Assembly (NCBI RefSeq): GCF_963506605.1
Contig: NC_083289.1
Span: 6,944,001-7,008,000 of the forward strand
From: Zootoca vivipara
Taxonomy: Eukaryota
Reading direction: 5' to 3'
Length of the DNA stretch: 64,000 nt
Shown here: one piece after another, positions 54,926 through 57,267 of the stretch
Numbering within the stretch: the first letter of the stretch is position 1
How the letters are laid out: the number at the start of each line of letters is the position of its first letter
Made by a program: the position numbers and the translations under genes
The notes under the pieces: generated by a model
Database searches by the model: none
The model's input: only the letters and a program-made list of their open reading frames with translations
What the model was told of the DNA's origin: nothing

Positions 54926-57267
54926 GATCAGGTGCTTAAGGCGCCTGTTCAGGCGCTGCCACAGGGTGGCCCCCCAGCAAAGCCCAGAGCAGCCCGTGGC
55001 ACCAGGTGAGCAAGTGGCCCTCCTTTCTTGGACAGCGGAGGGCAGGAATCAGCATTGGGGGGGGGGCTAGTCAAAAGATGGAAAGAGCCAGATGGCTGAA
55101 TCCGACCCAAGGTCCATTGGGCTGGAACCGCCTCCCCCCAGAGGCCAACCCATTTTGTGGAGTCTAATGAATGAAGCAGGGGGCTGGGCTGGAGGACTGG
55201 GCTGGGGGACAATTGTCAGCGGGAGTGGTACCTTCCCTGGGGAAAGGAGGCCAGAATTTGCCACCGAGCCCTGGGGCGTCCCACCTCTGCAGTAGGACTT
55301 GGAATCCAGGAGAAATCTCTTGGAATAGGCTTGCCAGGGGCTCAGGGACGGACTCACCTGTTCAAATGTCCTTCTTTTTGCAGTTCTGCGGTTCCACATC
55401 CCTTCCCCAGGGGTGAGTATTGCAGAAAACAAGAACAGGGACTGGATCCTTCAGACCTGCCCCCCACTCTGCACTCTCAGATGCAGAGAAGCCCTTCCCT
55501 CACAAGGAACTGACAGCCTGACTTTTGCATTTCAGCTGCTCGAGGATGAGCAATTATACATCCTCAGGGTCATCCAGAGTTGCCAGGCAGCTGAGCTCAG
55601 GGGGCTGCGAACCCTGAAGTGCTCCAAGCAGGAGACGGCCAAAGCCATTCTGGTGAGTGAGGGGTGGTGTGAGGGACCCCCGCGGGGAGGTGGGGGGAAG
55701 GAGGGGCTTTAGGGAAGGGGTTGTGAATCTGCAAAGTGGAGGACCCTGCCGGCTTAGGGTCCCCTGGAAAGCCAAGCCTGGTGTTGGGGGTCGGAGCTGT
55801 CCTCTGGAGGCCCCGGAAAGAGCTGATTTTCCTCCTCTGTTCTCTTCCAGGACATCTTGAGGCCCTTGGAGCACTTCAGGGATCGCCCCCTGACCCTGGC
55901 CCTTGCCTTGGAGGCCCTCCTCCAGCTAACGTGAGTGGGGTCTGTGATGGACGGGGTTGTGGGGGTGGGGGGGCAGAACTCCAGGGGAGACTCGGAGGAG
56001 GAAGCATCTAACCCTCTCCCTTTCATCTCTGCAGTACCATGAGGCCCAAATTCAGCTGCGATATGATCAGTGCGATCCTCCATAGGACCATGGAGGCAGT
56101 TCTTCAGGGCCCAGAAAAGGAGGAGGAAAGAGAGGTATGTCCTTTGTCCTGAATTCCCTTTGCATGGCTCTTTCTTCTTCATCATCATATTTCATCAACA
56201 TTCAAACTCTCTTCTCTCTTTTCCCGCAGGAGCTGAAGCGCCACTTCCGTCTCCTCCTTGGAAGTCTCCTTATGGAAGCCCCCAATCCGGGCACCCTCCT
56301 GCAACTTTTAAGTGTAAGTGTCCCGATGGCATCAGGGTGGTTTTAGGGTTGCCTGCCCCCCCCCCATCCCTTACCCAACGGACTGCCCCATTTCTGGGGC
56401 ACAGAGCCTGTTTGGCCCTCAATTTGGTCCAAGACCAATGTTGGCAAACCCTCATGGTCCAGAAGTGCCAGGGACTCTGTGGTGGGGGCAGTGAGGGCCG
56501 CTTTGGCCCAGACTGGCCCCTGACTCTGAGACGCTCTTTCCTCCTGCAGGACCTGCGAGGATACGCCCTGGGGGAAAGTGGGGAGGCTCAAAAACTAGCG
56601 GCCAGCAGCATATCGTTGCTGCTGGCCGTTGCCCGGAAATTTCCTCGCCTCCGAGTAAGTAGCTCGCCTTCTTCTATTCCTTCCTGTGTTTGCTTCCATC
56701 CCTCCAAGAGCACATCCCTGAGTGACCTTTAACACAGATGATGCGATGTGTGTCCCTGGGGGCCAGGGTGAGGCCAGAGGCTGCCCTTCCACCTCTGCCC
56801 AGGAGGCTGCAGGGCCCAGGGAGGTCCTCTGGAACAAGGGATTGGGCCCAAGACAGAGGGAGACCCGTCCTTCCTGGCTTGGCACTGCTTCTGTGCTCTC
56901 TTGCTGCCATCTGACCCCAATTTTTCTTTCCTCTGCAGATGACGGTAGTTCGGCCGGACCTGGCCTGCTTCCACCTGAAGCCGGAAGGTGAGCCCCACAC
57001 TATGGAGACAGCAAACTACCTTGTCTCTTATTTGCCCAAGACCCACTTCTGAGGTCTTCTTGCTGGGAGTCTGGCAGGACCTGCTTCCTGCCTGGCAGGC
57101 CTTTCCCACCTGGCCTGGGAGGACAGTGTCTGGACTGACTCCAGCTACATTTCCAACCTGGGACCTTTGACTGAAGGATGGGGGGGAAAGGCCTGTTTGA
57201 AAATCTCATTTTCATTTTCATTCTCATTCTCTTCCATCCAGATGATATTATAATTGAAGATTTATAG
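54926..57267 (+). CDS. Unannotated 9-exon gene, about 222 aa helical protein, probably maestro HEAT-like repeat (MROH)-like; reading frame intact, start codon uncertain
   Basis: Exons 54926-55005, 55384-55412, 55536-55652, 55851-55930, 56035-56134, 56230-56313, 56550-56654, 56939-56987, 57242-57267 (TAG). All AG/GT, phases chain 1,0,0,2,0,0,0,1 with no internal stop: IRCLRRLFRRCHRVAPQQSPEQPVAPVLRFHIPSPG LLEDEQLYILRVIQSCQAAELRGLRTLKCSKQETAKAIL DILRPLEHFRDRPLTLALALEALLQLT TMRPKFSCDMISAILHRTMEAVLQGPEKEEERE ELKRHFRLLLGSLLMEAPNPGTLLQLLS DLRGYALGESGEAQKLAASSISLLLAVARKFPRLR MTVVRPDLACFHLKPE DDIIIEDL*. The family call is from recalled resemblance to reptile MROH-like N-terminal regions, not from a search. 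Confidence 0.75.

Follow-up and report, generated by a model that had tools for sequence, protein, structure and literature searches.

A stretch of 64,000 nucleotides (nt) from Zootoca vivipara (GCF_963506605.1, contig NC_083289.1, positions 6,944,001 to 7,008,000 of the forward strand; hereafter the window, numbered from its first letter) carries a chain of nine small exons on its + strand at 54926-57267. Together with an upstream exon that bears the ATG, this chain is very probably an intact, real gene of ten coding exons that encodes a 226-residue HEAT-repeat protein of maestro HEAT-like (MROH) descent, which we call mini-MROH. With similarly high confidence, we regard the gene as a member of an old squamate gene family that was multiplied in lacertids and has at least eight named loci in Zootoca. 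The gene lies in one of the two copies of an inverted duplicon in the window; the copy at 52183-59227 is called copy A and its twin copy B.

Exon structure of mini-MROH

An earlier reading made from the letters alone (the sequence-only reading) had described nine small exons with canonical splice sites and a 669-nt stop-free frame ending in DDIIIEDL and a stop. A boundary script and exon-wise translations confirmed this description, and all the protein motifs quoted in that reading were found in the translations. The exons are 80, 29, 117, 80, 100, 84, 105, 49 and 26 nt long (range 26-117), and each is preceded by a pyrimidine tract and AG and followed by GT(A/G)(A/T)G(T/C) (gtgagc, gtgagt, gtatgt, gtaagt and similar). 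The frame chained from 54927 contains 222 open codons and ends with DDIIIEDL and the TAG at 57265-57267; the other two frames of the chain contain 6 and 14 stops.

The exon at 54926 begins inside a codon, after an acceptor, and the chain has no ATG ahead of its fifth exon; therefore, an upstream exon was expected. The pattern ATG-GGN-(CGN/AGR)-(C/T)T followed by GT had a single match on the + strand, at 52988-52998 (ATGGGCAGGCT, followed by GTAAGT), with a mirror match at 10289 on the other strand. When this exon is included, the open reading frame (ORF) is 681 nt long, comprises 226 codons plus the stop, and reads MGRL...DDIIIEDL. All nine exons of the sequence-only reading thus stand, whereas the first coding exon with its ATG had been left out, so a tenth exon was added. 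The apparent donor directly after the TAG does not mark the exon end: in the only contig that covers it, the last coding exon extends to 57314, from where it is spliced onward. The 5' end of coding exon 1 was placed from an acceptor-like ttttag at 52939. The product of copy A reads MGRLIRCLRRLFRRCHRVAP ... EDDIIIEDL-stop, and its 226 residues fall within the 210-260 residue range of its relatives.

For transcripts, four runs were mapped onto 53400-59300 (5,901 letters), with contigs for X1 and X2 and raw RNA reads for X11 and X12. That X1 and X2 are RNA is a guess, yet their contigs are RNA-like, as both spliced and intron-retaining forms are present. The exons, with the joints from these contigs and the RefSeq isoform P0001, are as follows.

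52379-52458 (+): alternative upstream exon; a GT donor follows, in phase with coding exon 2; non-coding, as this copy has no ATG
52940-52998 (+): coding exon 1; ATG at 52988, ATG GGC AGG CT, donor GTAAGT at 52999; MGR(L) plus donor pattern
54926-55005 (+): coding exon 2, first of the nine-exon chain; basic segment IRCLRRLFRRCHRVAPQQSPEQPVAP; joint 55005/55384 (X1, X2); 100% identical to P0001
55384-55412 (+): coding exon 3; frame, joint 55005/55384 and tblastn alignment
55536-55652 (+): coding exon 4; first HEAT helix; joint 55652/55851; skipped by RefSeq isoform P0001
55851-55930 (+): coding exon 5; joint to 56035 seen with the paralog letter G at 55930
56035-56134 (+): coding exon 6; joint 56134/56230
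56230-56313 (+): coding exon 7; joint 56313/56550; also 56313/56939, skipping coding exon 8
56550-56654 (+): coding exon 8; joint 56654/56939; the query exon that brought up the family in the word search
56939-56987 (+): coding exon 9; frame and tblastn; donor read through in P0001, which stops near 57050
57242-57314 (+): coding exon 10, the last; DDIIIEDL and TAG at 57265-57267, then 47 nt of 3' untranslated region up to a GT donor at 57315
57417-57499 (+): downstream exon; contains an ATG (57425); one X1 contig joins it to 57314; X12 has 22 loose ends here
58206-58390 (+): candidate terminal 3' exon; acceptor ccttag; AATAAA signals at about 58321-58370; 3' end inferred
58599-58729 (+): alternative 3' exon of paralog models; encodes the tails of P0002 and P0020; tblastn identity 83-92%

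The alternative upstream exon was located by tblastn with residues 2-28 of the Lacerta agilis protein P0012, which gave 78% identity at 52379-52458 and 81% at the mirror site 12394-12314.

Joined exons in transcript contigs

The sequence-only reading had proposed a check of its eight introns by junction reads. The X1 and X2 contigs join the exons at exactly the predicted sites for six of the eight (55005/55384, 55652/55851, 55930/56035, 56134/56230, 56313/56550 and 56654/56939). For introns 2 and 8, the latter being 56987/57242, no joint was seen in the contigs and reads mapped on 53400-59300; contigs that retain introns 2 and 5 occur, and coverage is also found inside the presumed intron 8. 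Exon 8 (56550-56654) is skipped in some contigs, and the paralog model P0020 shows the same form. In one X1 contig, 57314 is joined to the exon at 57417-57499 (57413) and then 57500 to about 58206-58221. Chance chaining of the exons, already held to be very improbable in the sequence-only reading, was rejected, as the contigs are spliced and database proteins match the chain exon for exon.

Copy A can be told from its twin by the letters 55566A, 55860A, 55930C and 56973A and by peptides such as YILRVI and LQLTTMRP. The spliced contigs carry 55566G, 55930G and 56612T, which are letters of copy B, together with 54950T/54951C and 55580C, which belong to neither copy. Since these contigs differ from the letters of copy A, they derive from paralogs.

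RefSeq models and the squamate family

Searches were carried out with single exons, with a one-exon ORF and then with database proteins as proxies, and the joined frame served only for the local frame check and for identities. A word search with the stop-free ORF 56073-56729, part of which covers one in-frame exon, yielded 15 proteins of 200-356 residues from Zootoca vivipara, Podarcis muralis, P. lilfordi, P. raffonei and Lacerta agilis. All were named "uncharacterized" or "hypothetical", and none (0/15) had a Pfam domain.

The 200-residue Zootoca vivipara protein P0001 (LOC132593187) agrees with copy A where copy B differs (DILRPLEHF, LQLTTMRP, CFHLKPE), with 100% identity on the exons concerned, and it follows the copy A sequence beyond the donor of coding exon 9, indicating that LOC132593187 is the RefSeq model of the copy A locus. 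The gene had been called hidden, which it is not: RefSeq already lists this locus and several paralogs as well.

Identity of the copy A product is 95% with the Zootoca paralog P0008, 83-84% with the Podarcis proteins (83% with P0007) and 82% with the Lacerta protein P0012. Type-A Zootoca paralogs in general show 93-95% identity, the type-B paralog P0015 71%, and proteins from Rhineura and Hemicordylus 27-38%. The tblastn blocks of relatives coincide with the exons, giving an exon-for-exon layout, and clean Podarcis members have 227-231 residues and read MGRLIRCLRRLF...EDDIIIEDL/I-stop. P0001, P0006 and P0007 also start with MGRL. N-myristoylation of the MG start was considered and not adopted, as residue 6 is Arg and one Podarcis member starts with MCRL.

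A family profile made from 8 members was searched against 1.84 billion representatives and matched 43 proteins at E <= 0.001; about 25 of the 43 were looked up, and all were from squamates or turtles except one weak metagenome match. The worm lizard Rhineura floridana and the cordylid Hemicordylus capensis have short proteins of 212-261 residues that contain both the basic N-terminal segment and the C-terminal tail. In an unrooted tree of 22 members, two lacertid subfamilies were seen, each with members from Zootoca and from Podarcis; Rhineura was sister to the two, and the Hemicordylus proteins were placed nearer to longer gecko and turtle forms. The sequence-only reading had suggested a lineage-specific mini-MROH with its own short acidic tail. 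A mini-MROH with its own tail is what we found, but the form is squamate-wide and specific neither to the species nor to the locus. The family loci are listed below.

Zootoca: LOC132592790, LOC118091098, LOC118078545, LOC118075723, LOC118076147, LOC132591967, LOC132592050
Podarcis: LOC114587072, LOC128404134
Lacerta: LOC117053180
Rhineura: LOC133378090, LOC133371380, LOC133374350
Hemicordylus: LOC128346053, LOC128343719, LOC128343701

Relationship to MROH proteins and the position of the stop

When six exon peptides were compared with Pfam, no useful match was obtained, only one chance-level match to spectrin (E 0.075). Among full-length relatives, P0012 matched PF23210 (HEAT_Maestro_2) with 19.1 bits (E 4e-4) and P0006 with 12.5 bits, at positions 557-637 of 650, both below the cut-off of 27 bits; a direct Pfam scan of four other full-length relatives gave no match. 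The family profile reached further, matching P0047, P0048, P0050, P0051, P0041 and P0040 at E values from 1e-14 to 4e-4. Geckos, turtles and an agamid are the sources of these distant matches, some of which bear the name "maestro heat-like repeat-containing protein family member 1" or "member 5"; they carry HEAT_Maestro_2 (positions ~525-649 of 650) and/or HEAT_Maestro (PF21047) above the Pfam cut-offs. Aligning the mini family with reptile MROH-domain proteins by hhalign, where the second alignment was built from the matches of the first profile, gave a probability of 99.7% and an E value of 3.9e-26 over 156 columns, and the matched part extends from the end of HEAT_Maestro_2 to the start of HEAT_Maestro. 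The resemblance to MROH and HEAT proteins that the sequence-only reading had proposed is thus borne out by the profile matches, by hhalign and by the HEAT fold of a relative's model described below. Its further statement, that the match is to the N-terminal region of reptile MROH families, holds only in the short reptile forms; in the canonical MROH domain layout the matched part lies in the middle.

Canonical MROH proteins are longer than about 1000 residues. The product of copy A lacks this long architecture, having 226 residues and only the last ~125 of 650 HEAT_Maestro_2 positions, and its ORF ends at the conserved tail; as judged from these alignments, mini-MROH is a derived short form and not a canonical MROH. 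The profile search at E <= 0.001 reached only short reptile MROH-type proteins, none longer than about 1000 residues, and no mammal or bird was among the matches looked up.

The gecko, agamid and turtle relatives P0041, P0051 and P0047 continue into HEAT_Maestro after the homologous part, as would be expected if the exon chain were a truncated fragment of a large MROH gene with further exons beyond the TAG. We consider this very improbable. The tail (E/D)(D/E)(L/I)x(I/L/M)E(D/E)(L/I/F) is conserved in the alignment of Lacertidae, Rhineura and Hemicordylus, and relatives of 210-260 residues in five genera (Zootoca, Podarcis, Lacerta, Rhineura and Hemicordylus) stop at this same acidic tail. In addition, tblastn with P0047 finds no HEAT_Maestro-like exons downstream within the window, and the duplicon itself ends at 59227. 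The sequence-only reading had named paralogs running far past the TAG as the sign of truncation; the test came out negative. The conservation of tail and stop position across genera indicates that the TAG is the natural stop of a gene that is no truncated fragment.

Predicted structure

The AlphaFold2 model of P0007, the relative with 83% identity, is all-helical, with a mean predicted local distance difference test score (pLDDT) of 70.8 and a predicted template modelling score of 0.66. The helices pair as 45-62/72-88, 93-108/115-131 and 137-158/163-179, followed by 183-200, and both ends have pLDDT below 50. The predicted fold is a HEAT solenoid of four repeats. An exhaustive structural search with this model returned importin-13, CLASP2, TOG domains of XMAP215, Kap121 and PP2A-A with Z scores of 10-12.5, a range that for helical repeats can reflect the common arrangement alone; the best matches (importin-13, CLASP2 and XMAP215 TOG domains) had Z scores of 11-12.5 over 150-180 residues. 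Consistent with such a fold, the language-model look-alikes that have a Pfam family all belong to HEAT/ARM or related alpha-solenoid families. Foldseek against the PDB gave no match at E <= 0.001, with designed helical repeats, TOG, ARM and 14-3-3 proteins at E 0.15-0.6, and the family profile searched against PDB sequences found only two designed TIM barrels at E 0.04, which were taken as noise.

The downstream exon and its paralogs

Downstream of the stop, the exon at 57417-57499 has its own ATG at 57425 (MMAAGPPFPYFHGGRREAVAVGPDQ). In X12, 22 raw reads with the paralog letters 57480C and 57489A continue from this exon into ...GPVCFEDVAV, which we take to be the start of a KRAB box. No KRAB exon was detected in the window, either by an exact 30-mer (<=3 mismatches) or by a degenerate FEDVA pattern, and therefore that exon belongs to a paralogous locus. 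In its paralogous copies, the 57417-57499 exon seems to serve as the first coding exon of KRAB zinc-finger genes.

These reads raise the question of whether the exon chain is translated at all. It might be a non-coding leader, or part of a transcript prone to nonsense-mediated decay, with the real product starting from the ATG of the 57417-57499 exon, a KRAB zinc-finger protein in the paralogs. The joint from 57314 to this exon in one X1 contig, the 22 X12 reads that pass into KRAB-box-like sequence, and the position of the mini-MROH stop upstream of these junctions all fit such an arrangement. We nevertheless hold it to be very improbable, as lacertids, Rhineura and Hemicordylus share the 226-codon frame with its start and stop even at 27-38% identity, which is not expected of a leader. 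Moreover, the window has no KRAB exon, and the mini-MROH ORF and the ORF from 57425 are mutually out of frame.

An intact copy and its pseudogene twin

Self-comparison of the window showed that 52183-59227 is repeated in inverted orientation at 12596-2716 with ~95% identity (indel columns counted as differences), so that a duplicon of ~7 kb occurs twice in the window and covers the whole gene. The parts of copy B that correspond to the gene are as follows.

4762-7118 (-): copy B, coding exons 2-10; all splice sites kept; pseudogene
10279-10289 (-): copy B, ATG-bearing first coding exon; MGR(L) plus donor pattern

Copy A is intact and copy B is a pseudogene. The frame of copy B is interrupted by TAA at 7018-7016 (CAA>TAA) and by TGA at 5476-5474 and 5380-5378 (both CGA>TGA), and its exon 2 contains a 48-nt tandem duplication, its exon 9 an insertion of 3 nt.

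The tandem duplication, at 7031-7078 (-), repeats the end of the second coding exon together with its donor, and the TAA is present in both repeats. Two of the three CGA codons of the ORF became TGA by CpG transitions and one CAA became TAA. Three nonsense changes among five B-derived replacement changes are more than a plain substitution spectrum predicts.

Selection was judged from the comparison of copy A with copy B only. The two differ by substitutions at 14 of 670 exon positions (2.09%), at 2.27% in introns and at 2.22% in flanks. Used to polarise the changes, the family alignment assigns five replacements (the three stops among them) to B and 3-4 to A.

Several observations weigh against a working mini-MROH gene in copy A. 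The equal divergence of exons, introns and flanks gives no sign of constraint since the duplication, and two of the copy A replacements are at family-invariant positions (Ser to Thr at 55930 and Arg to His at 56973). Splicing is shown for the family, but with contigs that carry paralog letters the activity of copy A itself is unproven, and X11 and X12 supply very few raw RNA reads over the exons. P0001, the RefSeq isoform of the locus, skips one exon and reads through one donor. In the sole contig that shows the 3' end, at least one further junction, and perhaps a second, follows the stop, and transcripts of this kind would probably be targets of nonsense-mediated decay. No family member scored directly against Pfam reaches the curated cut-off, and the function and tissue proposed below, like the roles of the two end motifs, are putative.

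Much of this would be explained if, within a real family, copy A were a young duplicate that looks intact but is functionally dead or redundant and drifts neutrally, which we regard as quite possible. Besides the uniform divergence, such a duplicate would account for the 3-4 derived amino-acid changes with two at invariant positions, for the transcripts that carry paralog letters and none specific to A, and for the aberrant isoform; its twin, copy B, is already dead. On the other hand, the ATG, the stop, the ten exons and the splice sites of copy A are intact over 681 nt, whereas its equally old twin has acquired three stops and two indels. Moderate constraint on A alone would be compatible with such small counts: ~10 exon differences are expected if only B drifts, and 14 were observed. 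The intact frame is the sole sign that copy A is still in use. For the gene as a whole, an intact mini-MROH with ten coding exons remains our preferred reading.

Neighbouring genes and repeats

Between the two mini-MROH copies, three ORF pieces on the + strand, at 19616-19897, 20254-20526 and 21678-22007, match successive parts of the TPH domain (PF13868; E 1e-12, 6e-10 and 1e-20). These TPH-domain exons at 19.6-22.0 kb fit the MNS1 gene named in the sequence-only reading. We also scanned the window for X-box patterns.

52483-52496 (unstranded): X-box-like (RFX-type) site GTCACCGTGGAAAC, one mismatch to GTNRCCNNRGYAAC; pattern scan; mirrored at 12277-12290

The site is just downstream of the upstream exon at 52379-52458 and at the same position in both duplicon copies. 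A perfect GTNRCCNNRGYAAC is found at 14420-14433, near the start of the MNS1-like gene, and several one-mismatch sites occur elsewhere in the window. Because one-mismatch sites are common in the window, the X-box-like site may be taken only as a weak hint of RFX control.

At the edge of the duplicon, the summed contig word depth over 58719-59112 exceeds 8,000 in X1 and X2, versus tens over the exons of the gene, and A/T-rich loose ends are seen at 58847; this segment is an abundant transcribed repeat resembling a short interspersed nuclear element. Fragments that resemble the reverse transcriptase of a long interspersed nuclear element are present at 53735-54377 and 47743-48397, are 84% alike and lie in opposite orientation; one of them is inside the first intron of mini-MROH. 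The segment 46400-47300 is G+C-rich and CpG-island-like, with long artefactual ORFs on both strands, and is probably the promoter of the minus-strand gene called TEX9 in the earlier note. A run of N is located at 51508-51715 of the window.

Discussion

The product of mini-MROH comprises three parts: a basic N-terminal segment (RCLRRLFRRCHRVAP; predicted with low confidence), about four HEAT repeats and a short acidic-hydrophobic C-terminal tail. Its most likely role would be that of a small alpha-solenoid scaffold whose repeat surface binds partner proteins; the two conserved termini could serve as docking or (auto)regulatory motifs. The tail resembles a SUMO-interaction-type motif in that acidic residues lie on either side of a hydrophobic core. 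The probable setting would be ciliated or male germ cells, because human MROH2B is listed as testis-specific (PMC7436996) and because of the neighbouring genes (MNS1-like).

Carried further, mini-MROH may be an old, squamate-wide and independently functional module rather than debris of MROH amplification. It would be a HEAT scaffold that docks on or regulates larger complexes via its termini in ciliated or spermatogenic cells and is driven by RFX-type promoters alongside MNS1/TEX9-type genes, and its amplification and turnover in lacertids would resemble those of testis genes under sexual or genomic conflict. We put this forward as a speculative and, taken as a whole, rather unlikely proposal. 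If the short form is functional, three squamate families have retained a four-repeat module that was pared down from a large HEAT-repeat protein.

In itself, the gene is part of an annotated, lineage-specific gene amplification, and RefSeq already contains a model of it. What appears to be new, though modest, is the assignment to MROH and the recognition of a short form with conserved ends across squamates. Our literature search found nothing on MROH in lizards or squamates, only mentions of MROH2B in mammalian testis and sperm. RefSeq proteins of lizards that were "uncharacterized" and had no Pfam domain can now be assigned as shortened MROH derivatives with conserved ends. The duplication and decay in lacertids offer material on the birth and death of young copies, as an intact gene and its equally old dead twin both lie in the window. 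A chain of exons picked out by eye in raw sequence has also turned out, very probably, to be a real gene.

Comparison with known systems

TOG domains and short stand-alone HEAT modules (CLASP, XMAP215) are similar to mini-MROH in size and repeat geometry, with Z scores of 11-12 and 154-174 residues aligned. Their identity is only 8-16%, however, no sequence-level homology was found in the Pfam scan or the PDB profile search, and no tubulin-binding function is to be inferred.

With the MROH proteins (PF23210, PF21047; the turtle "MROH1" and "MROH5" models P0047 and P0050), mini-MROH shares a HEAT-repeat core that is homologous by hhalign and a predicted alpha-solenoid fold. Unlike them, it has about four repeats in 226 residues, no HEAT_Maestro domain proper, and its own basic N-terminus and acidic C-terminal tail.

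The closest counterparts are the short "uncharacterized protein LOC..." proteins of squamates, which have the same length class, the same exon layout where visible, the basic N-terminus, the HEAT core and the acidic tail. Nothing essential separates them from copy A, which is a member of this group with a few private replacements.

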